DNA of 64,000 nucleotides from Cycas panzhihuaensis. Taxonomy: Eukaryota; Plantae; Cycadophyta. Positions 19,601 through 60,399 of this stretch are shown piece by piece. The translations under genes were made by a program, and so were the position numbers. Within the stretch, counting starts at the first letter, position 1; every line of letters begins with the position of its first letter. The notes under the pieces are model-generated. The model worked only from the letters and a program-made list of their open reading frames with translations. It had not been told where the DNA came from and made no database searches. The stretch is from positions 78,685,741-78,749,740 of the forward strand of contig CM041465.1 in the NCBI GenBank assembly GCA_023213395.1, written 5' to 3'.

Positions 19601-20112
19601 TAATAAAAATTGGGAATAAAAAGAAATTAATACAATCAAAATGAGGCAGTCATGAAGCAGAGATTTGCTTTTCACTAGCACATGTTTCATAGAAATCTTC
19701 AAAACTTTCTCATACATCATCAGAATTTAGAGTTGTTTGTTGCGTTGGAAAGCTAATTCATATGGATTCGTAATAGTGGTAATAAATTTCACTTTAAAGT
19801 CATAATAGAATTTGGGTATGGAAAGGAATTTGAGACAATCGTAAAGAAACAAACCCAGTCATCTACACTATGAAATCGCGCAATCTTGGAGAAATCTCTT
19901 GGAGCGAACTTGGAGGTATTTTATAAGTTCACACATAATGATTTATTATCATAGGCAATAAAATGGGACCATACTCACACACAAAAAACATCCAACAGAG
20001 CAACACCACCATCATGCAAACAATAAAAATCACACCATCATCAATGAACACCAAAGAGTAGGGTAAAGAATCAAACTTGGCGACATCAAAAGGGATAGAG
20101 CATCATGAAACA
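16635..20112 (-). repeat. 3' LTR of Gypsy C (~3.5 kb)
   Basis: TGTTACTGTAGCC...CATGAAACA; collinear with 37774-40052; PPT immediately to the right (20113-20123). Confidence 0.88.
19300..19480. repeat. ~20-21-bp degenerate tandem array inside the C LTR (AAAA-YGYGAYAAATTYT); also at 39300-39430
   Basis: About 8 consecutive units such as AAAAACGCGATAAATTTTG. Confidence 0.8.
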
Positions 20113-27893: not shown

Positions 27894-27898
27894 CTAAA

Positions 27899-28451
27899 TG
27901 TGAAAAATGGCCTAATGGCCTTACAATCCCAAGATCTAGAAGCTAGGTTCACTCTAGTTCTAGAAAGCAAAAATGCTGGATAAGTATGAAACTATAAGAT
28001 GAAACATAAGGAAGATAAAGCATGAAAAGGAGGAGTAAGAAAAATGATACCAAAGATGAGGAGTTGGAATTGGTCCAACCTCCAAATGAATAACAGTTTG
28101 ATTAGCAAACTGGTAGCATAACAATACAACTCCAACTCTATATGAGAACAATGAGGAGAGGTCTCATTATATAGAGTGAAAGGAGAGACCTAAGGCATTG
28201 GATGTTTGACAAGTGTCAAACATCCAAGGTACATGCCTTGCATATAGGACAGGTGTCCTTTTAGGGCTCTCAAGTGAAAAAAAGTGCATGGGGGTCCATT
28301 TGACCCTTTAGTGACAATGTTGTGTCACTAGAAAAGAATGTGGGTGTGCACTTTATCACTTAAGTGATAAGTCAACCCTAAAGTACAAAAGTACAAATAT
28401 TACATGACAAATAAAGTACATAGTCTTAACATGTAAACATAAGGTTTAACA
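27899..28451 (-). repeat. 3' LTR of Copia D
   Basis: TGTGAAAAAT...TTTAACA. Confidence 0.96.
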
Positions 28452-31400
28452 CCCCCCCTTACTATTTACAATGTTAAGTCGGACCCCTAGACCATCTCTA
28501 AATTTTACAAATTTTTCTCTACCAAGTAGCTTGGCAAAGATATCTGTTGTCTGTTGTTTTGTTGGTCTATATTGAAGGTTGATCTCACCACTTTGCACAT
28601 GCTCTCTGATGAAGTGATAATGAACCTCAATATGTTTGGTCCTTGCATGAAAGACAGGATTCTTGGCCAGCTTGAGCACACTTTGATTGTCGTAATAAAT
28701 CCTGGTGGGATGATCCTGCTCAAGTCCAAGTTCCCCAAGAATCCGTCGTAGCCAGATAGCCTCATAAGCTACGCTGACTGCAACTTTGTACTCTGTTTCG
28801 GTGGAGAACAAGGTAACATTGGGTTGCTTCTTGCAACTCCATGAAACAACTCCTGAACCAAGGGTAAAACAGTATCCCGAGGTTGATCTCCTGCTATCCT
28901 AGCAACTCGCCTAATCGTAACTGAGAACCCTTCCAGAGTGAAGTTCTCATCATGTGCATACTCAAGGCCATGCTGCAATGTGCCTTTAATGTATTTGAGT
29001 ATGCGTTTAGCTGCATTCCAATGTTTCTGATTGGGTTGAGACATGTATCGAAAACAAATCCCAATTGCAAATGAAATATCCGGTCGAGTGTCGGTGAGAT
29101 AAATGAGGCTACCAATCAACTGTCGGTAAAGAGTGGGATCTGCAGGTTCAGCTTCCTCATTGAGAGTAAGCTTTGTTCCATTCTCCATGGGTGTAGGCGC
29201 TGGCTTACAGTCGTGCATCCTGAACCGTTGCAAAATGTCCCAAGAATACTTTGCTTGGGAGATGAAGATATAGCCTGGCTGTTGCCATACCTCAAAGCCT
29301 AAGAAATAATGGAGAAGTCCAAGATCTGTCATCTCAAAACTCCTCTTCAAGTCATCCTAGAGAATTTGTATCATCTTAGTGTCATTGCCAGTGATCACTA
29401 AGTCATCTACATACAAGACAATAAAAACAACATGGTTTTTTCCATCTTTGATGTATAAGTTAGGATTTGAAGTAGAACGATGAAAGCCATGTCTCAAGAA
29501 GTAATCATCGATCTTTGAGTACCATGCTCTTAGAGCTTGTTTCAAGCCATATAATGCCTTTTTGAGGCGACAAACTAAATGCTCTTTACCTTGTACCTTG
29601 TAACCGGGAGGTTTCTCCAAGTATACCTCCTCCTGAAGATCGCCATTAAGAAAGGCGCTTTTCACATCCATCTGAAAAACTGGCCATTTGCATTGAGCTG
29701 CTAAGGCTAAGATGAGTTTGATGGTATTCATGTTAGCCACTGGTGCAAAATTCTCCTCGCAGTCTATGCCTTCCTTTTGTTTGAATCCTTTTGCCACAAG
29801 GCGGGCCTTCTGCCGCTTAAGTGTACCATCAGAATGGAATTTGGTCTTGTAGACCCATTTGTAGTTGATTGCCTGTTTGTGTTTAGGCAATTCGACCAAA
29901 TCCCCAGTTCCATTCTTTTTAATAGAATGGATTTCTTCATCCATGGCAGCCTTCCAATTCTCACTTTTAGAAGCCTCCTCAATTGAGAGGGAAGGAAAGC
30001 CTCAACAATCTTTTTGCCTTTGTCAATGGGGGGTTGCATGGATGCTGTTTGCAACTCCTTATGATCGTCTTCAACAAAGATTACATCTCTTGAGAGATGC
30101 ATTTTCTTTCCAATGGGATCATACAACTTGTAGGCTTTGTATGAATTGCATAACCTACAAAGATGCATTTTAGACTATGCTTGTCTAATTTTGTTCTTTG
30201 TTGATCGGGGATGTGCATATAAGCAGTACACCCAAAAGTCCTCAAATGGCTGACAGTTGACTTTTTGCCAGACCATGCCTCCTCTGGTGTGATGTTGGTG
30301 ACTATTGTTGTTGGACTTCGATTTGCTACATAGGCAGCTGTGTGGAATGCCTCTGCCCAGTAAACTTGAGTGAGTCCTTTTACATGCATCATTGCTTTGG
30401 CTTTGTTAGCCAAAGTTCTATTCACTCTTTCGAAGACTCCATTTTGTTGAGGAGTGTGAGGAATAGTAAGCTGTCTCTGAATGCCATTATCCTTGCAGAA
30501 TTGGGTGAATTTGTTTGAAGTAAATTCACCTCCATTGTCTGTCCTTAGTGTTTTGATGGATTGGCGGACTGCTTCTCCACTTCAAGCTTGAATTCTTTGA
30601 ACTTTGAAAATGCTTCAGACTTATGCTTGATGAAGTAAACCCAAACTTTATGAGAGAAGTCGTCAATGAAGGAGATGTAGTACAAAGCTCCACCAAAGGA
30701 TGCGGTGGACATAGGTCGATACAAATCTGAGTGTACCAGCTACAAAGGATATGATGCATGTCAAGCTTTGCCTTTAGGGAAAGGCAAGCAATGTTGTGTC
30801 CCCATTATGCATGTTTCAGAAAGACATTTTGTGCCATATATCTTCGGAAGCCCATGTACTATGTTTTTGTTCACCATCTGCCTGAGATTGTCTAAGCTCA
30901 AATGGCCTAGACGTTGATGCCAAAGTTGCATCTTGGACAAGGTTTGAGTGACAATGGAACCAGAGTAAGCAGAATCAAGTGTTATGTTATTAGCATCCAA
31001 TTTGTAGAGGCCATGATCCTCATATCCAACAGCTACTACTTGGTCATCTTTGTCACTTATTACACATTTCCCATTTTTGAATAAAATGCTCATCTGTTGC
31101 TTGTCCAATTTGCTAACAGATAGCAAGCTCTTGTCCATGGAAGGTATAAAGTAGGCATTGCCATTGGGAAATGAAGAGGAAGGATTAGAACAAGAACGAA
31201 ATGGAGCTATTGTGCCTATGCCAGAAATCTTGACAGATTGATTGTTGCCGAAGGTCACTGATTGACCTTTTCCTTCCTTGATGTCGCAAATGAGTTCTTC
31301 ACTCCCAGTCATGTGTTGAGTAGCTCCAGAGTCAATGATCCAAGTTTGATCAACCTTGGATGAATGATAAGCACAAAACAGTTTGTCCTCATCTCAGAAT

Positions 31401-34716: not shown

Positions 34717-34728
34717 GCTCTAATACCA
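34717..34728 (-). promoter_or_regulatory. PBS (tRNA-iMet, one mismatch) of Copia D
   Basis: Reverse complement is TGGTATTAGAGC, 2 nt from the LTR. Confidence 0.9.
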
Positions 34729-34730
34729 AA

Positions 34731-35283
34731 TTTGAAAAATGGACTAATGGCCTTACAATCCCAAGATCTAGAAGGTAGGTTCACTCTAGTTCTAGAAAGC
34801 AAAAATGCTAAACAAGTATGAAACTATAAGATGAAACATAAGCAAGATAAAGCATGAAAAGAAGGAGCAAGAAAAATGATACCAAAGATGAGGAGTTGGA
34901 ATTGGTCCAACCTCCAAATGAATAACAGTTTGATTAGCAAATTGGCAGCATAACAATACAACTCCAACTCTATATGAGAACAATGAGGAGAGGTCTCATT
35001 ATATAGAGTGGAAGGAGAGACCTAAGGCATTGGATGTTTGACAAGTGTCAAACACCCAAGGTACATGCTTTGCATGTAAGACATGTGTCCTTTTAGGGCT
35101 CTCAAGTGAGCAAAAGTGCATGGGGGTCCATTTGACCCTTTAGTGACAATGTTGTGTCACTAGAAAAAAATGTGGGTGTGCACTTTATCACTTAAGTGAT
35201 AAGTCACCCCTAAAGTACAAAAGTACAAATATTACATGACAAATAAAGTACATAGTCTTAACATGTAAACATAAGGTTTAACA
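34731..35283 (-). repeat. 5' LTR of Copia D
   Basis: TTTGAAAAAT...TTTAACA, followed by CTAAA. Confidence 0.96.
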
Positions 35284-35288
35284 CTAAA

Positions 35289-37773: not shown

Positions 37774-40052
37774 TGGTAACATAGCTAGGATAGGTCCTCA
37801 ATACCTCAAAGGAGAGGAAGAAATAACTCGACACGTACCTCTCAAGTCCCTCTTGAATAGAAAGGAGATGACTTCTTATGTGTGTGTGAAGAAGTGAATT
37901 TTAACTAACCACTAGCTAACAAATGAACAAAAGGCAATGACCAAAAGAAAACATAGAGAAACAAAGAGCAAACAATCCCTAGTTATTTCTCCTTGGGGAG
38001 ATAAACAACCAACAAGAGCTCCCAAGAATCAGGAGAGCCATTGGGACTATTGCCCCAAATGAAGACACCCTTGGGCTTCCTAGACTCCATCCACCCCAAC
38101 CCCCTATAAGAACCTAGCCCTCTACCCAAAATAAAGGTAAAAGAACTATGTCGTGTTATCTTTAGAATGGGAGGATTAACGAGAGAAGAGGTTGGAAGGA
38201 GATAGGACTATAAGATATATATATTCATGGATAGGTCAATGGGGAATCGTGCTTGTCAGTAACAATCCACCCTCATGGTTGTGGAAGGTCTAGAGTTGTC
38301 CGTTTCCTTCTTCTACTAGCCTCATCAACTCCCAAAGGTGAAAAATATAAGAAGACACTACTCTCAATCCAAAATATGGTAGTAGACTCTCTCAACCACA
38401 AGTGATCAATATAGTCACTTGTCACCTTTGGCATTCAAAGCATAGTAGGAGATTAATAACAAGAGAAATTAATCTCAAAAAAGGATGAGTTTGTATGTCA
38501 GGGGCAACATTTCTTGATCAATCAAAAAAACTTTCACAACGAGAAGTAAAAGGAGGGTGAGTTTGTATGCCAAGGGTCTCAATTCCTAGTCGATCAAAAT
38601 CTTCATCACTTAAGGGAACAAGACCTGGCCTAGGGGAAAAACAAACAAGAAGCCTCTAAATGCAGGCTAGATACACACTTTAAGATTTCATGCAACTAGG
38701 ACATAACCTATATTATGCAAACATGCCAAACAAGGAATGCACACTAGCTTAATACACTTAAATGCACACTATATGTCTATATTCTTTTCCCCTTTTACTT
38801 CCTTTTTTGTTTGTTAAAATAAATGTACATAATATCTACCCTAATGCACACACAAAAGAAGGTAAATATGAGTTCTTTCATTGCACTTACTCTTATCCTA
38901 GTTGCAAAATGTATATGGGTTCCTTAGCTTACACACTTCTTCCTCTTTGTTTTTACAAAATAGATGCCCTATTTATAGTAAAATGAGAGATATGGGGCTA
39001 GGATGAAGCCATGGTAAGATGGCCCATGGTTTTGCAAAAAGTTTACAACAAAAAGGTGAGAAAAATCTGAAATGGCTTCATTCTTATTGTTTTGCGCCCA
39101 TTATAGTGAAAAATGTGATGATCAATGAAAAACAAAATTTCAATAAAACTGAAAATGTGACAATCAGAATAAAATGCAATAAGTGATAAGATTGCATTTT
39201 TTATGGTTGCACAAAATTATGAAAAATGAGATAAGTCCATGAAAAATGCAACAAATAATTGGAAAACACAATTTGACATATTTTGTTTGTTACAATTGTT
39301 ATGAAAAATGTGATAAATTTCTCAAAAATGCATCAAATTCTACAAAAATGCAATAATTTTTTTAAAAATGTAACAAATTTTGCAAAAATATGATAAATTC
39401 GAAGAAAAATATGACAAATTCTACAAAAAGCTAACATCATAAAAACCTTTATAACTTTCGCATACGACATCAGAATTTAGTGTTGTCTATTGCATTGGAA
39501 AGCTAATTCATGAGGCTTCGCAATGGTGGAAACAAATCACAATTTAAAGACATAATAAAATTTGGGGATGAAGAGAAAGTTAAGACAATCATGAAGTAGA
39601 GGTCATATTTTTCACTGACACATGTTTTGTGGAAACCTTCATAACTTTCTCATATTACATCAAAATTTAATGTCATATTTATTGAGTTGGAAAGCTAATT
39701 CATGTGGGTTCAAAATGGTGGAAATAAATTGCATTTTAAGGACATAATATAATTTGGGTATGAAGAGGAAGTTGAGACAATCATAAAGCAACAAACCCAG
39801 TCATCTACGTTATGAAATCACGTAATCTTAGAGAAATCTCTTGGAGTGAACTTGGAGGAATTTTATAATTTTACACACAATGATCTATCATCATAGGCAA
39901 TAAAAAAGGACCACACTAGCACAAAAAACATCCAACAAAACAACGCCACCATCATGTAAACAATGAAAATCACACTGTCATCAATGAACACTAGATAGTA
40001 GGGTAAAGAATCAAACCTAACCATGCCAAAAGGGGCGGAGAATGGTGAAATA
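37774..40052 (-). repeat. 5' LTR of Gypsy C (~2.3 kb, lacks an internal segment)
   Basis: Collinear with the 3' LTR but lacks the segment equivalent to ~17792-18950. Confidence 0.88.
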
Positions 40053-40125
40053 GAGACCATTAAAATGAGTCTTTATAGAGGAGGTTGGTCAAGGGGGCGA
40101 TAAGGGAAGCGTATGTAAGGACTTG
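40053..40125 (-). pseudogene. Continuation of Gypsy B RT C-terminus
   Basis: YASLIAPLTNLLYKDSF*WS joins in frame with the sequence left of C; truncated beyond ~40125. Confidence 0.8.
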
Positions 40126-40859
40126 GTTCCTTAGCCTTCCTTGGTCATGTTATATCCCTAGTAAACATGTAAAATATATCTTTCTTTCTTAGTATTGTTC
40201 ATCCCATATGAGGTGGATACTTGATTCATTCTTTACCAGGTGTAGGGATGCACCATTTTGGTCTTATAGTTTAACAAGTATTTCTATGTAAAGATTGTAA
40301 TCCATTCAAACTTCAATTGTTCAACAGCTTAATCAATGTAAAATCACTCTTTGTTTGTTCCTTGCATAACACAAAAATAGCTATATTACTTAGATGGGCA
40401 ATGCAAAAAGAGGAGAACATGATATGAACGAGGGAATAAGAGGGAAAAAAACTAGTGTAATGGTAGGTGCTAGATTCAGAGACTTTCATGACTAGTTTGG
40501 GTGGAAGACTCAATTGTCCATTATACATTTTGCAAGGATTAATTCACCATGTTAAAAGGGAGGCTTTTAGCTTTCCATTGAGTGGTGAAAGTCCAAAAAC
40601 AAAAAGGTTATGTAAAATTAAAGTTGGAGGGTCAAAATTCCAATGTTGCAAATGTTGAAAAACTCAATGAGTTGGTATGTTTGAAAGGGAGAAAGGCCAG
40701 CTTAAATTGTTTTCTATCCTTTGAAAATCATCCCATAGTGAAGAGCATCCTTTAAGCTTTCCAATGACTGGTGAAACTCTAGAAACAAATGTCTGAGAGA
40801 GAAGTTATGAGCATTTGAATTGGACCCTCAAGTTGGGTTTTTTTAAAAGAAACATTTCG

Positions 40860-41370
40860 CATTTTTGTAGTCGGGTCATTGAGTGTGGACTCTTGTAGGT
40901 TGAAATACAAAGTTGCAAAACAAGGGTCGCAAGAGGAGAACCTTTTGCACTTTTGTACATGAGTCATTGAATGAAATCCAACAAATGGCAAGTTGTGAAG
41001 TTGCAAAAATAAAGGTCACGAGCAAAAAGCTCCTTGCAATTTCATAAGTGGGTTGTCGAGTATGAATATGTGATGATTGAGTTGCAAGGTAAAGTCATGA
41101 ATAAAGACCTTTTCACACTTCAAATATAGGCTTACAATGTCTAGGTTTTGAAGTTACGAAACAAAAGGATGGCAAGTTAAGGCAAGCATTTTGCAATTTT
41201 GCAAATGAGCTACTAAGTGAAAAATACATGTGTATGATTTTGAAGACACGAAATAAAAAGGCACGAACAAAGAACCTCTTTTCACCCTTCTGCAAATGAA
41301 CCATTGATATCAAACTTATGTGAATAAAATTGTGAAATTACGAAACAAATGATTTTGTAAGGGAGAAGCC
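40860..41370. repeat. Degenerate ~80-90-bp tandem array (~6 units) in an unassigned LTR-like segment
   Basis: Recurrent GAAGTT(G/A)C(A/G)AAA..AAAGGTCACGA..C..TT(G/T)CA core. Confidence 0.6.
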
Positions 41371-41505
41371 TAGATTTCAGAGCTCCATAGAAAGGATTTT
41401 AACTCACTTGTTTGAGGTCAAATTTGACTAATTCCATTTGCATTGGAATCCTTGATCGCGAGTCTACATTCTCAAGTAAGATAAATTATCCGCACCTATG
41501 AGATG

Positions 41506-44500
41506 TGAAAAGGGTTAATGACATAAGGTCATTACATTAGTTGATTATTTCGAAAAAGGGTCTTAAGTGAACTTTAAATTAGATCACTTAAGTAAAATGC
41601 ACTTTCATATGCATTATGTGTAATTTCATTTAACCTAACTCTAATGCCCCCTCTCTCAATATAAAAGCAAAAGCTCAATGGAGGAGATTCATTCTTACCT
41701 CCCCATTTTGTGAGAGCTACTTTCTTTCTCTCAAGTCTCTCTTGCTCCCATGTTTGCCTTTGTGTTTAGTGCATGGAGATGAAGGATAGATCCACTCATT
41801 TCATGTGGTATCAAAGCTTGCTTCCTTCATATTCCCCATTTGCGCTTGCAATGGAGCCATCACTTCTTTCTCCCCCACAATCCATATGGTGAAGGAGATT
41901 GTGAAAGTGAATTTAGAAATATTTTCAAGTTATTATGATAGCATATTTTGTATTGTTTGCTTTTCCTTTCTCTTTTGCAGGTTTGAAAGCATAATACAAG
42001 GAGTTGTAAGGCCCAAGGATTCCAATCCTTTGCTGGCATTCATGCTATCTCATTCTTCCTTTTTCTTTTCCCTTTTTTGTCCATTTAACAAGGGGAAATG
42101 CTGCCGAAAATTTTTCAGCATTTAGAAGAATGATTGTAAGGGGAGGTTTTACCCATTTTTTTTAAAGAATTTCAAGACATTTAAAATATCTATCATTGTA
42201 TGCTCTCACCTTGCCCATATTGGAATCCTGGTGATCAAAAAATGATGGAAATTTCATATGGTATCATGTGTTAATGAAATATTAGCAAGCTGAAATTTCT
42301 GCAGAAATACAATTTGATTGCTGAACTTCACAGGTCTGCAAAATCTTCTACAGAGATCTAATTGAAGTGATTCTAATTGTCAAAGATGGGGCTCTGAATC
42401 TACTTTCCAGCGCAAAAACCGGCACCTAATTTGGATGTCGTATGAAGAAGTTATTGCTGTTTTAGTGAACAACAGTTATTTTTAGTAAGAATTCTGAAAA
42501 AATATAATTTCTTAACTTTGTAGGGCTGTCAAAAACTTTCCAGAACTCATTTGGACCTGATTCCACTTCTTGAAGATGAAGCTCTGAGTCTAATTTGCAG
42601 CACAAAAACCGGCACTCCATTTCAACATCGTGGGAGAAAGTTATTGCTGATTTAGTGAACAGTACTTTTTTTGTATTAACAAAAAAAAGGAAAAAGAAAA
42701 AAAAAGTGAAGAAAATTTCTTCCTTTTTATAAGGCTTAAAAGCCCATTGTAAAAGTGAGAAAAAAACACCTGGATCGGAGAAATATCCGGTGTCCTCACT
42801 CACTTATTAGCATTGCATTTCAGCACTCTAAAATCACTGAAAGCAAGCACTCCAAAGACACTTCAAGCAAGCACTCCAAAAGCACTCCAAGCAAGCATTA
42901 TTTTCAGTTAAATGTACGTTTGATGCAATTCGATAATCTTTTCACTCTTCCTAAAAGGAACGTATCACATACACTATTTTCCGCCATCTTGTACCTATTC
43001 ACACACTTGCCAAGGTTTAGATACCTTGGTTGGCAGAATGCCGTGCCATAAAGGAGATGTGGGTTTCAAGTTGGGACTGGACTAAACCGGAATATTGGTG
43101 AGGTTTGGTTAGCCATACCATCGTGCCTCAATCAGGGATCATCCTGATAACCAACCGGGAAAACTGAAACTTTAATACAAGATTAAAATATACCCGATCC
43201 AATATCCATCATAGCCATGGGTATGCATGTATCACTCTTTAGAGGAGGTATATAGCTGCTCATTGGTGAACTGGGTGAGGATTGGGAGTACCTGGTTGTA
43301 GACTTGGATTTCATCACCAAGCACGATTGCAGTATCATGGTGAAGGCCAACTTAATTCTACTAGAAGCCTAGGCATCCCTTCAACAACCTCAACTACACG
43401 TTAGACACAAGTTAGAGGTTATTGGGTTGATTACGCATCCTACATTTGAGTTTCAAGTTATGTAAACCCAATGATGTCAACTTCTACATTGGCCTACAAT
43501 CTTGTATATTGATCACTTACTTATTTGTAAAAAGTGATCCATAGTGTAATCACAATCATAGTGCTTCTCATATTCCTGCTGCGTCAGGTTAATATTTGCC
43601 ACAAGTGTTAGTGGCCAATTTTTATCATAGTGCTTCTCATATTCCTGCTGCGTCAAGTTAATATTTGTCACAAGTGTTGGTGACTTTTCTCTAAGTTGCT
43701 CCCTTCATCTTTAAGCAACCATTCTCACTTCTTCTTCCTTCTTCTACACTACTTTATTACATTTCCCATTTGTAAATAGTGATCGGTCATTTATTGCCAT
43801 CACTTTTATAGTCCCTTATTCATTTCTTCCCTTTTAAAAAGACACAATGTTTCATAGTTCAAGGAAAATGTGAACTGCATTCTAAAAGGGAAAGAAAATT
43901 GGGACATGTGGTTAACTGGTGTCAGAAATGCTGCAAAGTATGAAAGTCTATGGAGAGATCACTTACAACCTACACCACTGCTGACTACCATACTACCACA
44001 AGCTTCTTGAGGAGGTGCTCCAACCGCTCCCATCAAGGCTGCAGCTAAACGCCAATGGGAACTTGATGATGATATAATCCGCAGGATATCGCTTGTCACC
44101 GATTATTCCTGCATAATCTCATTGATGAAGCCGTATGATACAAAGATGGAAAGTTCTTGAAGTTCTTAAGAAGAACTTTGACACTAAATCAGACTTAGAA
44201 TTTGTTCACTTAGTGCTGAAGATGAACAAATTGAAAATGCAGAAAGGACATGCAAGTCAGACAATCAATCTCCTTCGTCCAATCAAGCAAGCCATTGATA
44301 AAGATTTTAAAACTCAATGCATTACATGGGCTTTCTTGATTTAGTTATATCTCCATATCCCAGATTATAAAAATCTATTGGGGAGTTTTCAATCTAGTGG
44401 AACTTTGAAGACCCTAAACTTTGAGGATCTTGCTGATAAGTTCATTGAATTTGATAAGACCTTTGATACCAACTTTGCCACTACATCAGATCCAGTTGAT

Positions 44501-45127
44501 GCTGCTTTTGAAGTGGAAGAAGATCTTTGTTACACCAAAAATCAAGGTCAATACTCTCAGAGGTGGTAATTCCGTGGAAGAGGAAGAGGTAGACAACAAG
44601 GACAACGCCCTCTTAGTCAACAGGCTCCTCAATTCCAACAAAATAGCCTCAAGGCCAAGGCCAAAATAATCAACTCGACCTAGATCCAGTATTCAGAGAC
44701 AATCCAACCAGCCCAATACTTGGACTGGAAATCAAACAATCGTGTGCCAAAGGTGTAATAGAAGAGGACATTATGCCAAAAATTGCAGAACTGCCACCAA
44801 CAAACTACCAAGTTATCAACAGCACCATGGTGCAGATAATGTTGATAATACTTTTGAAGATGCTTTTGGTGGAATGCAATTTGCTCATGCACACCTTCAA
44901 AGAATTGGGACCACTTCATCAAATGTTGTTGATAGATCCACTAAGTATATTGAGGCTCATTGTGGCTATGTTTATTCACTTTTGCCTTCACCACTTGGAG
45001 TTGCAAATAGTGCTACCTCAAATACTTCATCGTGGATCATGGATACTGGAGCAACACAACACATGACTTGTCATCGCTAGTTCTTTCAAGATTTTGACTC
45101 TGAAGTTCGTGGTGTTGCACACATGGC
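41506..45127 (+). mobile_element. Copia E (same family as F), 3'-truncated
   Basis: LTR 41506-41803 matches the F LTRs; PBS TGGTATCAAAGC 41806-41817; leader and gag collinear with F; stops after the protease motif. Confidence 0.92.
43847..45127 (+). pseudogene. Copia E gag and protease start
   Basis: CQRCNRRGHYAKNC zinc knuckle; SSWIMDTGATQHMTCH. Confidence 0.9.
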
Positions 45128-46000
45128 CTTTTCGAACCTCCTTTCCCTCGAGCAACCTTAATTGTCGTGCACTGACCGTATGGTCCGTTGGTCCCCTAGG
45201 GAATGCACCAAGCTTAAGGTTAATTTAGAGGCAAGGTTTGAACTTTTTTTGAGCCTCTCCAACAGATTTTAAATTCACTTTTAAACAAGTCTAAGTGAAT
45301 CTTCTTACTTGGATTTTTTTATGCCTTTTGGCTTACAAAGAATGAGCACAAAACAGATTTCAAGTGCTTTAGATCCAAGTGAGGTGCTATGTATGCTTGA
45401 GTACAATGATAAAGTACTTTGAGTACTTAAAGAAAATAATGTAAGGAACCTTTGATGACTGAAAAGAGGGTTCCTTTTAACCTTCAAAATCTGATGAAGT
45501 GATGAAGTCACAAGAAAAGTGTACTCAAGAAATGCTCCAAAGGCCAACACAAGCTCCACGCAGCAGCTGTTGAGACTTAAAATGTCTCAACAATCCAACA
45601 AGAAAATTGTGATTTTATTAAGTTTCACAATGAGCCTTCCCTTTTTTTGAAGTGAAGAAGGCCAAGGTCACCATGCAAGGTGCCAAAAACTGAAGTTAGG
45701 TGGTAATTTTCTTCACCTTTACAATGTAAATATTCCTTTTGATTACATTAATTAAGCTCAATGATGCTTCAATAGCAAGAAAGTGTGCTAAAAGAGCTTA
45801 AAACAGTAAGTACAAAAGTACTTTTGAGAATCAAGACTGCCAAAAAAAGATTTTAAGTAGGCCTAGCTATAAAGACTTAAAGTCTTTTTAAAATTCCCCC
45901 CTTGAGAAAATTTAAAAAAAATCTCTTAAAACCTTTTAAAAAAAAATGATTCATATGAGCATATTGTTCAAAATATGCTAAGAAGAGATTGATTTTAATC
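45127..46000 (-). mobile_element. Fragment of a D-family 5' leader, opposite orientation to the adjacent RT
   Basis: CCTTTTCGAACCTCC...GGTCCCCTAGGGAATGCACCAAGCTTAAGG matches 32663-32753 in the same + orientation as minus-strand D. Confidence 0.85.
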
Positions 46001-46053
46001 TTGAAATTTGAGCCGAGCAACGTGCTGATCGGGCAATGACATTTGTCGAATGC

Positions 46054-47500
46054 TGACTTGGTCGAATTGCCTCCACACAAACAGTAATCAATCGGGTTGT
46101 AAATGGGTCTACAAGACCAAATTCCATTCTGATGGGACACTCAAGCGACAGAAAGCAAGACTTGTAGCAAAGGGGTTCAAACAAAAGGAAGGAATTGATT
46201 ACGAGGAGACCTTTGCACCTGTAGCAAACATGAACACCATCAGACTTCTCTTGGCCTTAGCTGCACAATGCAAATGGCCCGTATATCAGATGGACGTGAA
46301 GAGCGCCTTCCTCAACGGCGATCTTCAAGAGGAGGTATACTTGGAGCAACCTCCTGGTTACAAGGAACAAGGCAAGGAGCATTTGGTATGTCGCCTCAAG
46401 AAGGCTTTGTATGGCTTGAAGCAAGCTCCTAGGGCATGGTACGCAAAAATCGATGAATACTTTTTGAGACATGGGTTTCATCGATCCACATCTGATCCAA
46501 ACTTGTACATCAAACATGAACATCACCATGTCATTTATATTGCCTTGTATGTAGATGACTTAGTGATCACGGGTGATGACACTAAGCTCATCAATGTTCT
46601 CCAAGATGATTTGAAGAGAAGTTTTGAGATGCCTGATCTTGGACTTCTCCATTATTTTCTAGGCTTTGAGGTATGGCAGCAGCCAAGCTATATCTTCATT
46701 TCCCAAGCAAAATATTCTTGGGACATCTTGCAGAGATTCAGGATGCACGACTGTAAGACGGCGCCTACACCCATGGAGAACGGCACCAAGCTTTCTCTTA
46801 ATGAGGAAGTCGAACCAGGTAATTCCACTCTCTATCGACAGTTGATTGGCGCTTGATATATCTCACCAACACTGCCCGGACATTTCATTTGCGCTTGGGA
46901 TTTGCTCTCACTTCATGTCTCAACCCAATCAAGCATTGGCAAACAAAGAAACGCATATTCAAGTATATCAAAGGAACATTGCGGCTTGGACTTGAGTATG
47001 TACATAAGGAGAACTTCACTTTGAGGGGTTCTCGATTCGATTAGGCGGGATGCCGGGATAGCGGAAATCTACCTCGGGTTCTTGCTTTTACCCTTGGTTC
47101 AAGAAATTGTTTCATGGAGTTGCAAGAAACAACCAAATGTTACCTTGTCCTCCACTGAAGGAGAATACAAAATGCGGTCAGCGACTTGTGAGGCTATCCG
47201 CTCGACGGATTCTTGATGAGCTTGGGTTTCAAAGCGGTGACCAGCCTTCATTGTGACAATCAGAGTGTCCTCAAGCTAACTAAGAATCCTGTTTTCCACG
47301 CACGGACCAAGCATATTGAAGTTCACCGCCATTTCATCAGGGAGCATGTACACAGTGGTGAGATCACACTTCAATATCGACCAACGGAGCAACAGACGGC
47401 AGATATCTTTACCAAGCCACTTGGTAGAGACAAGTTTGTAAAATTCAGAGATGGTCTTGGTGTCCAACTTAACATTGTAAACAGTAAGGGGGGGTGTTAA
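46054..47500 (+). pseudogene. D-family Copia G RT and RNase H
   Basis: [26 protein letters not shown]...[10 protein letters not shown]...IVNSKGGC, close to the D protein. Confidence 0.93.
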
Positions 47501-47987
47501 ACCTTATGTTTAAATGTTAAGTTAATGTACTTTTATTTTTCATGTAATATATGCACTTTTACTTTAGGGGTGACTTATCACTTAAGTGATAAAGTGCACA
47601 CCCACATTCTTTCTAGTGACACAACGTTGTCACTAAAGGGTCAAATGGACTCTCATGCACTTTTGCTTGATCCAAGTCATGTATCTTGGATGTTTGACAC
47701 TTGTCAAACATCCAAGGCCTTAGGTCTCTCATTTCACTCTATATAATGAGACCTCTCCTCATTGTCTAAAAGGAGAGTTGGAGTTGTATTGTTATGCTAT
47801 CAGTTTGCTAATCAAACTGTTTCTTCTTGGGAGGTTGGACCAATTCCAACTCCACATATTGGGTATCATTTTCTCTTGCTCCTATTTCTCTTTGTGTCCT
47901 TTATACTTTCATGCTTTCATGCATTTGTAGTATTATGCTTGTACTTATGATCTTGGGACTAATGTGGCCTAATGCCCATTTTTCATA
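47495..47987 (+). repeat. 3' LTR of Copia G (D family)
   Basis: Follows PPT AAGGGGGGG; TGTTAAACC...TTTTCATA is the reverse-complement homolog of the D LTR, about 60 bp shorter. Confidence 0.9.
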
Positions 47988-53004: not shown

Positions 53005-53301
53005 TGAAACGAGTTAATGTCACAAGGTCATTATATTAGTTGATCATTCCTAAAAGGGTCGTAAGTGAACTTTAAATTAGATCACTTAAGTGAAATGCGC
53101 TTTCATGTGAATTATGTGTAATTTCATTTCACCTAACTCTAATGCTCCCTCTCTCAATATAAAAGTAAAAGCACAATGGAGGAGGCTCATTCTTACCTCC
53201 CCATTTTGTGAGAGCTACTCTTTTTCTCTCAAGTCTCTCTTGCTCCCATGTTTGCCTTTGTGTTTAGTGCATGGAGATGAAGGATAGATCCACTCTTTTC
53301 G
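53005..53301 (+). repeat. 5' LTR of Copia F
   Basis: TGAAACGAG...CTTTTCG; TATAAAA box at ~53158. Confidence 0.94.
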
Positions 53302-55167
53302 TGTGGTATCAAAGCTTGCTTTCTTCATATTGCTCACTTGCACTTGCAATGGAGCCATCACTTCCTTCTCCCCATAATTCATGTGGTGAAGGAGAATTGT
53401 GAAAGTGAATTTGGAAATATTTTAAAGTTTTTATTATAGAATACTTAGTATTGTTTGCTTTCCCTTTCTCTTTTGTAGGTTTGGAAGCACAATATAAGGA
53501 GTTGTAAGTCCCAAGGATTCCAATCCTTTGATAGCGATATATGCATATCTCATTCTTCTTTTCTTTCCCCTTTTTTTGTTCATTTAACAAGGGGAAATGT
53601 TGCCGAAATTTTTTCAGCATTTAGAAGAATGTTTGTAAGGGTAGGTTTTGCCCACTTCTTTTAAGAATTTAGAGCCATTTAAAATATCCATCATTGTATG
53701 CTCTCACCTTGTCCATATTGGGATCCTAGTAATCAAAAAATGATGAAAATTTTATATGGTACAATGTGTTGATGAGATATTTGCAAGCTAAATTTTCTGC
53801 AGAAATAAAATCTACTTGTTGAACTTCACAGGTCTGCCAAAAATTCTAGTTTCCAGCACCAAAAACGACACTCAATTTAGTTGCCGTATGAGAAAGTTAT
53901 TGCTATTTTAGTGAACAGCAATTATTTTTAACAAGAATTTTGGAAAAATATATTATGTCTACTTTGCAGGACTACCAAAAATTTTGCAGAGCTCATTTAG
54001 ACCTGATTCCACTTCTTAAAGATGCGGCTTTGAGTCTAATTTGTAGCACAAAAACTAGCACTCAATTTTGTTATTGTGGGAGAAAGTTATTTCTATTTTA
54101 GTGAATACTTTTTTGTTAAAAAAATGTGAAGAAAATTTCTTTGTTTTTCAAGACTTCAAAGCCCATTGTAAAAGCGAGTAAAAAAACACTTGGAACGGAG
54201 CAATATCTGGTGTCCTCACTTACTTATCAGCATTTCATTTCAACACTCCAAAATCACTTCAAGCAAGCACTCCAAAGGCACTCCAAGCAAGCACTCTATT
54301 TTTAGCTATATGTACGTTTGATGCAAATTTGATGATCTTTTCACTCTCCCTAAAAGGAACGCATCACGTACATTATTTTCCGCCATCTTGTACCAGTTCA
54401 TATATTTGCCAAGGCTAAGATACCTTGGTTGGTAGAATGCTATGCCATAAAGGAGGTGTGGGTTTCAAGTTGGGACTAGACTAAACTAGAATATTGATGA
54501 GGTTTGGTTAGCCGTACCATCATGCATCAATCAGGGATCATCCCGATAACCAATCAGGAAAACTAAAACTTTAATACAAGATGAAAATATACCTGGTCTA
54601 ATATTTGTCACAGCCATGGCGTCGGAGGAGGTATATAACTGCTCATTGGTGAACTGGGTGAGAATTGGGAGTACCTGGGCTCTGTTGTGACTTGAATTTA
54701 ATCACCAAGCACAATTGCGGGTATCGCGAATGAAGGCCAACTTAATTCTACTAGAAACCTAGGCATCCCTTCAACAACCTCAACTACATGTTGTACACAA
54801 GTTAGAGGTTATTTGGTTGATTACACATCCTACATTTGAGTTTCAAGTTGTGTACACCCAATGATGTCAACTTCTACATTGGTCTACAATTTTGTATATT
54901 GATCACTTACTTATTTGTAAAAAGTGATCCATAGTGTAGTCATAATCATAGTGCTTCTCATATTCTTGCTGCGTCAAGTTAATATTTGTCACAAGTGTTG
55001 GTGACTTTTCTCTAAGTTGCTCCCTTCATCTTTGAGCAACCATTCTCACTTCTTCTTCCTTCTGCTACACTACTTCATTGCATCTCCCATTTGTAAATAG
55101 TGATTGGTCATTTATTGCCATCACTTTTATAGTCCCTTATTCATTTCTTCCCTTCTTGAAAGACACC

Positions 55168-58100
55168 ATGTCTTCACAGTTCAAGCAAAATGTGAACTGC
55201 ATTCTTAGAGGGAAAGAAAATTGGGACATGTGGTTCACTGCTGTTAGAAATGTTGCAATGTATGAAGGTTTTTGGAGAGATCACGTACAACTTACACCAA
55301 TTGTTGCTGCCACTGCTACCACAGCTGCCTCTGGAAGAACTCCTCCAACTTCCACTGAAACTATAACCAAACGCTAATGGAAACTTGATGATGATAAAAT
55401 CTGTGTAGGGATACTTCTTGTCACTAATTATTCCTTACATAATCTCATTGATGAAGTTGTATATGATACATCATAGAAAGTTCTTGAAGTTTTCAAAAAT
55501 AACTTTAACACTAAATCATACTTGGAATTTGTTCACTTAGTGCTGAAGATGAACAAATTGAAAATGTAGAAAGGACATGCAAGTGAGACAATCAATCTCC
55601 TTTGCCCCATCAAGCAAGTCATCGATAAAGACTTCAAGACTCAATGCATTACATGAGCTTTCTTGATTCAGTCATGTTTCCATATCCTAGATTGCAAAAA
55701 TCTATTGGGAAGTCTTCAATCTAGTGGCACCTTGAAGACCCTAAACTTTGAGGCTCTTGCTGATAAATTCATCGAATTTGATAAGACCTTTGATACCAAC
55801 TTTGCCACTACATCAGATCCAGTTGATGCTGCTTTTAAAGTGGAAAAAGATCTTTTTTATACCAAAAATCAAGGTCAATCCTTTTGCAAAGGTGGAAATT
55901 CCCGTGGAAGACATAGAAGTAGACAACAAAGACAACGTTCTCATGGTCAACAGGCTCCTCAACACCAACAAAAACAGTCTCAAGGCCAAGGCCAAAATAA
56001 TCAACTTGGACCTAGATCCAGCAATCAAAGACAATCCAACTAGTCCAATACTTCTTATAGGACTGGAAATCAAATAATTGTGTGCCAAAGGTGTCATAGA
56101 AAATGACACTATGCCAAAAATTGCAGAACTGTCACCAACAAACTACCAAGCTATCAATAACACCATGGTGCACATAATGTTAATAATACTTCTTTCGAAA
56201 ATGCTTTTGGTAGAACATAATTTTCTCATGCACACCTTCAAAGAATTGGGGCCACTTCATTAAATGTTATTTGACAGATCCACTCAGTATATTGAGGCTC
56301 ATTGTGGTTATGCTTATTCACATTTGCCTTCACCACTTGGAGTTGCCAATAATGTCACCTTAAATACTTCATCTTAGATCATGGATACTGGAGCAACACA
56401 ACATATGATTTGCCATCACCAGTTCTTTCAGGATTTTGACTCTGAAGTTCATTGTGTCGTACACATAGCTGACAAATCATCTCAGCCAGTCGAAAGACTT
56501 GGAACCATTTGCCTAAAACTCCCAGGTCTTCCAGATTTTACCCTTGCTGATGTTTTATATATTCTTGCTCTGAAACAGAACCTGCTCTCCCTATCCACCC
56601 TTGTCTCTTATGGATTTGATATGAGTGTAACTGCAAATAATAAAACTCTCTATGTCATTTACCCTCCTTCAAATGCTGTGGTTATGATCGGAATTCTTGA
56701 TGGAAAACGTTTTTGCCTAACTGGCTCACCATTCTCTGAAGCCAACTGTGTTGATGATGACTTTGCTTTTACCACAACCCTGACACCTCAAAAGTTTTCC
56801 CAAGAGGCCCTATGGCATGCTCATATGGGCCATATCAAAATTGATCGTTTAAGAGAACTACATGCCACTCTTCCTGGTATGCCTAGGCTCTCCTCTAAGC
56901 CCTTCAACTGTGAAGCATGTATCATTGCCAAATCTCAAAGACAACCCTTTCCTCGTAGTCAATAGAAATCTATTCAACCTTTGTAGCTTGTACATTCAAA
57001 TATATGCAGTCCTATGCCCATCCCTTCTCTCAAACATAAGTGGTACTATATTACTTTCATTGATGATTTTACCAAAAAAGTATGGGTTGGTTTTCTTGCA
57101 AAGAAAGATAAAGTTTTTTTCATGTTTCAAGCTTTCAAGGCCCGCATCGAAAATGAATCTAGATTCAACATCAAAATACTCAAGACTGACAATGGTGACG
57201 AGTACACCTCTAATGAGTTTGAATCGTACCTACATCACCATGGGATCAAACATCAGACCACTATTGTAAGTACACCCCAACAAAATGGAATTGCCGAGTG
57301 CATGAATAGGACCATCATGAACATGGCTTGTGCTATGCTGGTATACAAAAATGTCCCTGTCTATCTTTGGGCCAAGGCTATCTGGATTGCCATGCATTGC
57401 ATCAACATTGTTAGTCCCTCCAAGCTCGGCCCCTCTCCACATGAAATGTGGTATGGACAAACTCCCTTTGGCTCCCGCTTCAAAATTTTTGGCTCTACTT
57501 GTTATGCTCACATTTTGGAGGAACACATAAACAAACTCCAAGATAGAGCCCTCAAAGTCATATTTGTCAGATACCCTATGGACAAAAAGGGATACAAGGT
57601 TTTTCTACCTTCATAGCACAAAATCATCATCACTAGAGATATTATCTTTGCAAAGACTGAAGATCAATTGCTCAAACTTGACTCCAAGATGTCTTTGTAC
57701 TGATTTAATGATGCTACTGAATTTGATGACCAGATTCCAAAATTTAGGGGGGGAGATGCTCAACAGCTGTTCAAAATCTTGGAATCTGATAATAGAGCCC
57801 CAGAGGATATAAGCTGTGACTCCCAACCGATGTGTGCACATCTAGCACCATCATTTAAGAACAACCAACTTGACAAAGGCAAATCCATAACAGAAGGACC
57901 ACCTTCTCCAACATCAGTGGCTGGCCCATCTTCTCAAATATCGTCAACTTCCTCTATGCCAAACATTTCACATGATCCTTTTAGGATCAAAATGAAGACC
58001 AAGAGGCTGTGAAAATGAAAATCTCATTCCCAACTTGAGGTTTTCGTGAAGCCTACTAGCTACAAAAGGACATGCAACCAGATGAGGTAGACAAAACTGG

Positions 58101-59730
58101 CATTAGAAGTGCGCATAGAGCAAGGATGCACGAATCGCTTTCCATTGAGCTTGAACCAACAAAACTGCACCTTGCTCTCAATGAAGAACCCCTAATGTAC
58201 CAAGAACCTGTAAAGCATGCAGCTTGGAGAAATGCCATGAATGAAGAGTACCAATCTCTTATCAAGAACAAGACATGGGAGCTTGTTGATCTACCACTTG
58301 GAAGAAAGGTAGTTCGAAACAAATGGGTGTTCAAAAATAAGTATAGATCAGATGGAACCCTTGAAAAGCACAAGGTGAGATTGGTAGCAAAAGGATTCAC
58401 GCAAAGGGAAGGCATCGACTACGCTAAAATCTTTACTCCTACAACCAAGTGGCCTACAATCAGAACTCTTATAGCCTTGGCTGCTCAACAGGGTTGGAAA
58501 ATCTACCAGCTCGATGTTAAAACCGCATTTCTCAACAGGGACCTTAAAGAAGAAATTTACATGGCTTAGCCAGAAGGATACAAGATTGTTAGTCAAGAGC
58601 ATAAGGTTTGCAGGTTCAAAAAGTCCTTGTATGGCCTAAAACGAGCCCCTCGTGCTTGGTTTACCAAGTTGTCTGGAAGAATGAGGCAACTTGGATATGA
58701 GGTTTGTGACTATCAAGATATTGATACAACACTATTCATAAAGCGCCAAAATGATAAAGTTACTTACCTCTTAATCTTTGTGGATGATATGTTAATAACG
58801 AGGAATAGTGAACAAGTAATCAACCAACTGAAGAAGGACCTTGCTAAAACTTTTGAATTGTCTAACCTTGGATTGATGAAATATTACTTGGGAATTGAAG
58901 TAACTTAAAAGAATGGCAAAATCTTTCTCTCCCAAGAAAAATAAATCAACGATTTTTTGACAAAGTTCCAATTAGAAGATGCTCGACCAATGGTTACACC
59001 TATGGAACCTAATATTAAACTCTCAGTTGATGGTGACACTAGGGAGGCAGATGCAACATTCTACAGGCAACTTGTAGGTAGTCTCATCTATATTACCAAC
59101 ACAAGGCTAGATATTGTATTTTCTATTGGCATTCTTACACGATTCATAACAAATCCTAAGCAGAATCACTGGCAATTTGCAGTACGAGTGTTGAGGTACC
59201 TGAAGATGACCAACAAATATGGTCTATGGTATGAACCTAATGTAGAATTCAAATTTTATACATACACAAACTTAGACTTTGCCGAAGATAAAGACACAGG
59301 AAGATCCACATCTAGGTATGTAGCATTTCTTGGAACATCACCAATATCATGGAAATCCAGACGATAGAAGATAGTTGTAGACTCAACTACTGAAGCTAAA
59401 TATATTGCTGCTTTTGAGACAAGCAAAGAGGTGATATGGCTTAGAAAATTGTTGAATACATTAAATATCACCTAAATAAGTTCTACCAGCCTACGTGTCA
59501 ATAATCAATCTACAATCCAAATGGATAAAAATCCTATATTTCATGATTGTACCAAACATATAAGTACGAAAGTCCACAGGATTAGAGAACAAGTTCATGA
59601 TGGCACAATTCAAATGAAGTACTGCCCCACAGCAGATCAAGTGGCCGACATCTTCACCAAACCAGTGCAAAGGGTAAAGTTTGAATAGTTCTTAAGGCAA
59701 CTCGGCCTTAGGGCCTCCATCTCCAACTGA
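55168..59730 (+). pseudogene. Copia F gag-pol polyprotein (disrupted)
   Basis: MSSQFKQNVNCILRGKENWDMW; MDTGATQHM; FIDDFTKK, KTDNGDEY, PQQNGIAE; QLDVKTAFLN; FVDDMLI; RNase H. Confidence 0.95.
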
Positions 59731-60102
59731 TTGAAGGAGATGACAATAGGACCATCATACTCTATCTCATTCATGAAAACCCCTTGTAGGCGCGAAAGGA
59801 TAAGGGTTGTATCATTTTGGAAAATCAAAATCTGTAAAAACTCAAAAGGGCATGGGGGATGACCAAATGGTATATGGAAACTCAGTAGATTTCAGCTACA
59901 AAATTCATTGTATGAATTAGCTATCTAGCTTCATTTAAAGAGCCGCCTAAGCCAGGTTAGTAGATTAGAAAGTCCATGGGTTTTCTTCCCCATGAGGGTT
60001 TCTCACAAAAGTGTCATAGTAGTTTGTTTTGTAAGAGGCTTAGATGAAGACCTCATAGGATAGAATAAAGATGAAATGACCTTTTACTATTAAGGGGGAG
60101 AT

Positions 60103-60399
60103 TGAAACGGGTTAATGTCACAAGGTCATTACATTAGCTAATTATTCCTAAAAGGGTTTTAAGTGAACTTTAAATTAGATCACTTAAGTAAAATTCACTT
60201 TCATGTGCATTATGTGTAATTTGATTTTACCTAACTCTAATGCTCCCTCTCTCAATATAAAAGTTAAAGCTCAATGGAGGAGGCTTATTCTTACCTCCCC
60301 ATTTTATGAGAAATACTCTTTTTCTCTCAAGTCTCTCTTGCTCCCATGTTTGCCTTTGTGTTTAGTGCATGGAGATGAAGGATAGATCCACTCTTTTCA
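60103..60399 (+). repeat. 3' LTR of Copia F
   Basis: TGAAACGGG...CTTTTCA, then CATAA. Confidence 0.95.

Follow-up and report, generated by a model that had tools for sequence, protein, structure and literature searches.

The question raised by this locus is whether unrelated LTR retrotransposons can share a cis-acting element. In the 64,000-nucleotide stretch analyzed here (the window), a short module had been predicted to occur with fixed geometry, in pairs ~190 bp apart, in the non-coding DNA of both Gypsy and Copia elements, and to bind protein or organize chromatin. The homology and the period stand; the proposed function is not supported, and the most probable explanation is a satellite-like tandem repeat carried by both superfamilies.

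Host Elements and Tandem Arrays

Six module pairs were listed in the original prediction. Four of these are real, with core spacings reproduced at 190 bp (39451/39641), 202 bp (19499/19701), 190 bp (42448/42638), and 190 bp (53894/54084), and all four lie in non-coding DNA of elements with identified LTRs and pol domains (Table 1). As they comprise the two LTRs of one Gypsy element (C) and two copies of one Copia family (E and F), they represent only two independent families. The remaining pairs, termed I leader (61493/61686) and I LTR (62981/63171), were rejected: HMM matches to 62981 have E values of 0.03–8.5, the partner sites are not matched, and the lag signal at these sites is not above background. 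Chance remains the best reading for them. Both sites fall beyond the end of Copia F at 60398.

Table 1. Retrotransposon features and repeat arrays in the window
Feature	Coordinates	Strand	Details
Gypsy C second LTR-like repeat, 3' LTR	16655–20112	−	Extra 1.16-kb insert at 17791–18955
C-type array, 3' LTR of Gypsy C	19487–19846	+	Period 202; cores 19499–19558, 19701–19760
Gypsy C LTR-like repeat, 5' LTR in element sense	37800–40052	−	Matches 16700–17791 and 18955–20110 at 77%
C-type array, 5' LTR of Gypsy C	39439–39788	+	~1.85 units of 190 bp; cores 39451–39510, 39641–39702
Probable third, more diverged dimer (U)	40440–40830	−	Period ~186 bp; core-like ends 40756–40808, 40567–40626
Copia E 5' LTR and PBS	41507–41817	+	LTR 41507–41803; PBS 41806–41817, tRNA-iMet type
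E/F-type array, Copia E 5' leader	42297–42682	−	~2.0 units of 190 bp; cores 42395–42454, 42585–42644
Copia F, complete	53006–60398	+	LTRs ~296 bp, 93.6% identity; PBS 53304–53315
E/F-type array, Copia F 5' leader	53790–54117	−	Cores 53841–53900, 54031–54090

Element C is a large, non-chromovirus-like Ty3/Gypsy element with long LTRs (2.2 kb), whose RVT_1, RNase H, and rve domains follow the Gypsy order on the minus strand (25561–23597). Its array is located ~230–610 nt from the 5' end of the 5' LTR, and hence presumably in U3. Elements E and F display the Copia domain order on the plus strand (RVT_2/rve), with the array in a long 5' leader; in E the array begins ~480 bp downstream of the PBS, with the module oriented on the minus strand. 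The 5' LTR of E, where loose ends of contigs fall at 41506 and 41803, is 91–94% identical to the F LTRs, and the 5-mers flanking F (CGTAA/CATAA) look like a target-site duplication. E/F is a very abundant Ty1/Copia family. A protein search with an F integrase fragment returned matches of at most 48% identity, none from this genome, and an E/F-specific 22-mer pattern gave no match in a metagenome scan.

The pairs had been described as a module repeated ~190 bp apart. While this spacing holds, a short module has not been placed twice; rather, the whole unit is tandemly duplicated, with unit-to-unit identities of 72–83% across 154–195 bp at lags of 190–202. In C, the array at 39.4 kb matches itself at 83.3% (39443–39596 vs. 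39633–39788; autocorrelation lag 192), and that of the 3' LTR at 74% (19485–19637 vs. 19687–19840; lag 202). Compared with its counterpart at 39.4 kb, to which it is 80–85% identical, the latter array carries a 13-bp insertion. The Copia E array matches itself at 72% (42297–42491 vs. 42492–42682; lag 190). The Copia F array, also with a lag of 190, is 81% identical to that of E and has a ~50-bp deletion in its first unit. The arrays start and end at different points within the unit (1.85 units in C vs. 2.0–2.3), and no long array of the ~190-bp unit was seen in the window, with at most 2.3 units per locus.

Elsewhere in the 64 kb, whole-unit duplication at a comparable lag was found only at U (lag 186; 72% identity across 60 bp, which exceeds the 95th percentile of background). 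The pattern ATAACTT-N35-45-TGGAAAGC matches this locus, with 0.01 matches expected; family HMMs did not match it, even when the search space was reduced to 500 bp. Judged by pattern and lag, U is probably a third, more diverged dimer, positioned between the hosts C and E. A ~90-bp repeat seen by eye at 40830–41380 was unsupported by ungapped autocorrelation.

Public contigs of related copies suggest that unit number varies. Joints in the C array show net skips of 190–192 bp as well as 190-bp joints that go back, the latter possibly reflecting the aligner's choice of register, and a joint in U skips 185 bp. These are suggestive of relatives with one unit fewer or more, so that pairs may not be a fixed feature. 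The C array seems to be missing altogether from one related contig (joint 39454 to 39825). The bin containing the first C core reaches 3–10 times the depth of its LTR neighbors, which, contig depth being a crude measure, suggests additional contexts for the core.

A Homologous Core in Two Superfamilies

The gapless 60-bp alignment of 39451–39510 with the reverse complement of 42395–42454 contains 43 identities (71.67%), as claimed. The distance from CTTTC to AAGTTAT is likewise 45 bp in C, in E, and at 40757/40802, and a pattern search gave three matches against 0.01 expected. Offset and spacing hold, but the fixed geometry inferred from them is a trivial consequence of gapless homology combined with a tandem period. 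The module has the same orientation relative to the sense strand of its host in both families, C being a Ty3/Gypsy element on the minus strand and E/F a Ty1/Copia family on the plus strand.

Homology was confirmed by reciprocal leave-one-family-out searches. An HMM built from the Gypsy LTR copies alone recovers 4/4 units of E/F (E = 1.7e-6, 2e-6, 2.1e-3, and 7.8e-3, the first and third of these in Copia F), and an HMM built from E/F alone recovers 4/4 units of C (E = 9.4e-6 to 0.011), the matches agreeing in strand and model position in both directions. The best E value in 40 dinucleotide shuffles was 1e-3, against 1.7e-6 for the real sequence. The similarity thus exceeds chance, and the cores are homologous. 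Chance similarity between AT-rich repeats, suggested by the AT-rich genome and a single-pair BLAST E value of only 0.003, is effectively refuted for C and E/F by these reciprocal matches, which the shuffles fail to reproduce.

The C LTR and the E/F leader resemble each other solely where dimer aligns with dimer, and there only the ~60-bp core can be aligned. Homology of the 130-bp inter-core segments was considered and is unsupported (z = 2.0 and 0.0 in global alignments compared with shuffles). The inter-core is nevertheless exactly 130 bp long in C2, E, and F.

Origin of the Arrays

These observations are best explained, with a probability of roughly 60%, by variable-copy, satellite-like tandem arrays of common origin in the non-coding parts of unrelated LTR retrotransposons. 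The module would be the ~60-bp stretch that is best conserved within a satellite-like unit of ~190 bp, head-to-tail arrays of which (~1.8–2.3 units here, probably variable among relatives) would have lodged in at least two unrelated families. The 45-bp internal offset would then reflect gapless homology, and the ~190-bp spacing a tandem period that unequal exchange inside the arrays maintains. Common descent of the array is the most likely reason why both families have the repeat. We infer two routes by which it may have come to be shared: independent capture from a genomic “library” of tandem repeats, or exchange between elements, for instance by template switching of reverse transcriptase on co-packaged RNAs, or by recombination. 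If the captured variants had already diverged, the core being a slow-evolving box in the source, this would explain the restriction of cross-family similarity to the core, the equal period, and the later uniform drift within families. The net 190–192-bp contig joints fit variable-copy behavior. Against this explanation, its basis is a single 64-kb window with two or three families and no long satellite array, and simple neutral descent would predict changes in length by indels, where the unalignable inter-core segments are identical in length.

That identity of length also counts in favor of an unlikely alternative, in which the core is a selected cis-acting box for a host or element protein and its ~190-bp spacing is functionally constrained (by nucleosome phasing, insulation, anti-silencing, or an enhancer dimer). 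Only the core can be aligned between families, yet the distance between cores is preserved. The matching orientation relative to both sense strands, the presence of the same end motifs and a 186-bp period at U, and the greater depth of the core bin than of the LTR flanks also point in this direction. However, conservation of the core does not exceed that of the non-core sequence, the pooled identities within families and between paralogous units being 75.7% and 76.4%, respectively (Fisher p = 0.78). Along the E/F leader, the array belongs to the less conserved segments and does not surpass the flanks, and F has lost ~50 bp of it. A ~10-bp WW periodicity is lacking, with power at 9.8–10.7 bp at the 4th–22nd percentile of windows of the same size and below the window median; AA/TT/TA spectral power in this range lies at the 7th–53rd percentile. 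RNAalifold on eight cores in sense orientation yielded a consensus fold with 0 pairs. With unit number apparently variable as well, these results speak against the nucleosome-phasing, insulating, or protein-binding function that had been proposed for the module; what the two superfamilies do share is a homologous non-coding segment in the same orientation with a ~190-bp period. There are, moreover, two to three independent observations, and with two families a matching orientation has a 50% chance. Similarly doubtful, and marginally more so, is the related idea that the core is a constrained, protein-binding-like box of an old ~190-bp family, repeatedly recruited by Copia and Gypsy elements, with the length of the unit under constraint.

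It is improbable that the dimers are a nested, small non-autonomous mobile element (a MITE- or SINE-like dimer of ~380 bp) inserted independently in an ancestral C LTR and E/F leader and amplified with its hosts. The shared segment is indeed limited to the dimers, in regions that otherwise have nothing in common, and one related contig seems to lack the C array entirely. However, C, E, F, and U share no terminal inverted repeats at corresponding positions, and there are no recognizable target-site duplications. The copies lack a head resembling tRNA, 5S, or 7SL and match no Rfam family, the two families have unrelated inter-core sequences, and the differing phases of the arrays (1.85 vs. 2.0–2.3 units) are typical of truncated tandem arrays rather than of transposon copies.

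Just as improbable is the separate capture, by each family, of pieces of a tandemly arrayed cellular unit consisting of a short conserved “gene” and a variable spacer, as in small-RNA clusters or the intergenic subrepeats of rDNA. Such a source would suit a conserved stretch of ~60–70 nt next to a spacer of similar length that cannot be aligned between families, followed by uniform drift after capture. Against it, ARAGORN found no tRNA on the array copies, and an Rfam search of four copies gave no snoRNA or other family, only noise far below gathering scores and inconsistent between copies; nor is there a consensus fold. Chance similarity of AT-rich repeats, already dismissed above, is the least probable explanation by far.

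Significance and Comparison With Known Systems

Satellite DNA is known to arise from tandem arrays carried within plant LTR retrotransposons. For now, the present finding is a modest curiosity, a cross-superfamily variant of such arrays that known repeat dynamics explain. A core found both in the LTR of a Gypsy element and in the leader of a Copia family would nonetheless show that sequence passes from one superfamily to another or is taken up repeatedly from a shared pool of tandem repeats; either has, to our knowledge, rarely been shown. Were the core constrained in many families genome-wide, it would point to a factor-binding element exploited by very different elements; and should the reading as a constrained box be true, retrotransposons of both superfamilies would share a chromatin- or factor-binding cis element.

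Plant LTR retrotransposons with tandem arrays in their expanded non-coding regions have been described, along with scenarios of capture and of origin (Vondrak 2020, PMC7004042; Neumann 2019, PMC6317226), as have the hypervariable 3' UTR arrays of Tat/Ogre and Retand elements (Macas 2009, as cited in PMC7004042). A homologous core across two superfamilies, as found here, is not known to be described in PMC7004042 or PMC6317226. As in Tat/Ogre and Retand, whose arrays vary in copy number and are carried round the genome by the host element, head-to-tail units of satellite-like length occur in non-coding LTR-element DNA, and one host is a large, non-chromovirus-like Gypsy element with long LTRs. 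Unlike in Tat/Ogre, the arrays are located in the LTR of C (U3 side) and the 5' leader of E/F, not between the coding region and the 3' LTR.

In the satellite DNA “library”, conserved boxes occur inside otherwise variable monomers. Reminiscent of this are the ~190-bp monomer, the conserved stretch in an otherwise divergent unit, and the retention of the period despite sequence divergence; the presence of just 1.8–2.3 units at each locus, which all lie inside or beside transposons, and the lack of a long array in the window are not. Repeated enhancer boxes in the U3 of LTRs, such as the BII boxes of tobacco Tnt1 and the 72–75-bp repeats of retroviruses, resemble the tandem duplication in the U3 of element C. 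In contrast to these, the unit is far longer (190 bp), and the repeat also occurs past the PBS in the 5' leader of a Copia family, a position that less readily suggests an enhancer. Short conserved or captured sequences in the non-coding DNA of plant LTR elements are further exemplified by the conserved motifs of Sirevirus Copia elements and the 5S-derived LTR segment of Cassandra TRIMs. However, those belong to one lineage or to a recognizable cellular RNA, while the present core spans superfamilies and has no cellular source recognizable by ARAGORN or Rfam.

Template switching, which has given rise to recombinant or chimeric LTR retrotransposons (Sabot and Schulman 2007, PMC1950507), is a mechanism by which heterologous elements could share a segment. 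The cases in PMC1950507 involve related elements or swaps of whole LTRs or internal regions; here, a ~380-bp non-coding cassette would have come to be shared between Copia and Gypsy.

Composition of the window and its retrotransposons

The window is AT-rich and nearly all of it consists of decayed LTR retrotransposons (see table). The analysis covered these 64 kb, overlaid with contigs from public runs. Sequence of element C, a Gypsy element, is low-copy in public runs by contig depth, and one of its LTRs carries a 1.16-kb insertion (17791-18955) missing from the other. The family comprising Copia copies E and F is extremely abundant: in four public DNA runs its contig depths sum to 1e5-1e6, vs 5-8 for single-copy pieces. 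Its LTR is only ~300 bp long, contigs from the four runs ending at 41506 and 41803, and its leader exceeds 2 kb. F is structurally complete, with ~296-bp LTRs (93.6% identical) flanked by the 5-mers CGTAA/CATAA. E (41507-47883) is collinear with F as far as 45127; 45127-45299 matches a piece of the leader of Copia D in direct orientation, and 46055-47883 matches D itself (28031-29902 plus its LTR) at 83%, inverted. By its sequence, E looks chimeric. Just past the primer-binding site (PBS), an ATG with an open frame is preserved in each of the two copies (41790-42122, 111 aa in E; 53340-53480 in F), followed by a pyrimidine-rich tract ending in AG that resembles a splice acceptor. These could represent a leader ORF or an intron of the Copia family.

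Features of the retrotransposons and repeat arrays in the window
Feature	Position	Strand	Remarks
Element C domains	25561 down to 23597	minus	RVT_1, RNase H, integrase; domain order of Ty3/Gypsy
Element C LTR-like repeats	~16655-20112; 37800-40052		77% mutual identity
Copia D LTRs	27896-28452; 34728-35284		younger element nested in C; LTRs 96% identical
Copia E	from 41507	plus	Pol_BBD, rve, RVT_2; one Ty1/Copia family with F
Copia F	53006-60398	plus	Pol_BBD, rve, RVT_2; one Ty1/Copia family with E
PBS, tRNA-iMet type	41806-41817 (E); 53304-53315 (F)		two bases past LTR
Array C1	19487-19846		in C LTR; period 202
Array C2	39439-39788		in C LTR
Array in E	42297-42682		in 5' leader
Array in F	53790-54117		in 5' leader
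Dimer U	40440-40830		more diverged

Tandem arrays with a period of about 190 bp

The original prediction described a short module placed twice, ~190 bp apart, in six pairs. For the C LTR, E and F pairs the spacings (190, 202, 190 and 190 bp) are correct, and unbiased autocorrelation of the whole window (lags 60-400) returns lags of 190-202 at four places: the two C LTRs, the E leader and the F leader. However, unit-to-unit similarity spans 154-195 bp at 72-83% identity in all four arrays, and thus covers the whole unit, beyond the 60-bp module. The arrays comprise 1.85 units in C and 2.0-2.3 units in E/F, F being short of ~50 bp through a deletion, and those of C and E/F start and stop at different phases of the unit. 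The six pairs reduce to two independent families (C and E/F) plus U.

Joints in contigs of related copies gain or lose a net 190-192 bp within the array of C; at U the net change is 185 bp, and one related contig apparently has no C array at all. Joints that skip sequence point to relatives one unit shorter, while those that go back may reflect extra units or merely the aligner's choice of register.

Directly upstream of the array, both C LTRs hold an AT-rich tandem repeat of 20 bp (or 40 bp) in ~8 copies (19310-19477, 39304-39429), and a 24-bp tandem repeat lies ~140 bp from the E/F leader array (42822-42897, 54244-54296). This architecture of a short repeat beside a 190-bp array is alike in both; the short-repeat sequences are unrelated.

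Homology of the core between superfamilies

Aligning 39451-39510 without gaps to 42395-42454 in reverse complement reproduced the reported 43/60 identities exactly. When a profile built from the four C units alone was run over the whole window, its best non-self matches were the four E/F units (E = 1.7e-6, 2e-6, 2.1e-3 and 7.8e-3), all at model positions ~11-72 and on one strand. The reciprocal E/F profile recovered 4/4 C units (E 9.4e-6 to 0.011). In a comparison with shuffled sequence, as originally proposed, the best E among 40 dinucleotide-preserving shuffles was 1e-3, reached once. Chance similarity is therefore excluded, and the resemblance of C to E/F is real homology. The module is antisense to both elements (C domains minus, E/F domains plus), which bears out the earlier claim of a like orientation in the two.

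When the full C LTR and the full E/F leader were compared at high sensitivity, the dimers were the sole similarity, and alignment is limited to the ~60-bp core. The inter-core sequence aligns no better than shuffled sequence; C2, E and F nevertheless agree precisely in its length, 130 bp, and C1 carries a 13-bp insertion.

An 'unassigned' copy had also been reported within U. Its two end motifs stand at the C/E offset (45 bp), with 0.01 matches expected by chance, but the C and E/F family profiles do not detect U. U is itself a dimer (lag 186, 72% identity over 60 bp), and is probably a more diverged relative. The remaining pairs (61493/61686 and 62981/63171) gained no support from profile search or lag analysis; F ends at 60398, so these sites lie outside the E/F family, and they were rejected as chance. 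Between C and U, 40168-40409 is 5-20x deeper than its neighbors in public contigs; it probably represents a further small element of moderate copy number.

Divergence within families and tests of function

In C, unit-versus-unit identity about equals LTR-versus-LTR identity (about 80% vs 83%). The two units therefore differed very little at the time of insertion, pointing to homogenisation or re-duplication shortly before. In E/F, the two units had already diverged before E and F split, and the array is, if anything, among the less conserved parts of the leader.

A selected cis module, as originally envisaged, retains some probability: the 130-bp spacing is preserved and the core is conserved between families. 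Within families, however, the core evolves no slower than the remainder (75.7% vs 76.4% identical in eight unit-to-unit comparisons; Fisher p = 0.78). The arrays lack a 10-bp WW-dinucleotide periodicity, their power lying under the window median, and the eight cores in sense orientation yield no consensus secondary structure. Protein binding by the module is compatible with all of these results, but nothing in them supports it; the chromatin reading likewise gains no support.

Origin of the arrays

These observations are best explained by a satellite-like repeat of ~190 bp whose short tandem arrays, variable in copy number and with a common origin, sit in non-coding parts of LTR retrotransposons unrelated to one another. 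The 45-bp internal offset is plain gapless homology, and the 190-bp spacing is the period of the array, which unequal exchange would preserve. Any account has to combine similarity across families confined to the core, an identical period, and drift that is uniform inside each family. These are reconciled most simply if each family took its array from a pool of related, already diversified repeats, in which the core would have been a slow-evolving box. Alternatively, a cassette may have been swapped between families long ago by template switching, a mechanism for related elements (PMC1950507), or by recombination.

Capture of a cellular array of 'gene plus spacer' units would match what is seen, but a tRNA search found none, an Rfam search of the copies gave nothing above noise, and no gene is recognisable. 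It is improbable that two or three families separately produced de novo duplications of equal length. For a small mobile element nested in each host, the expected hallmarks did not turn up: the dimers lack the inverted termini of MITE-type ends and a small-RNA-derived head.

Tandem arrays in expanded non-coding regions are well documented for large non-chromovirus Gypsy elements, where capture versus origin is still an open question (PMC6317226; PMC7004042). Unlike those arrays, the present repeat occurs in a Gypsy LTR and a Copia 5' leader; this location and the sharing between two superfamilies are its unusual points.

Elsewhere in the window, 5514-5801 holds 2.1 copies of a 138-bp unit at 98% identity, a tandem duplication of young age that has no relation to the 190-bp repeat.
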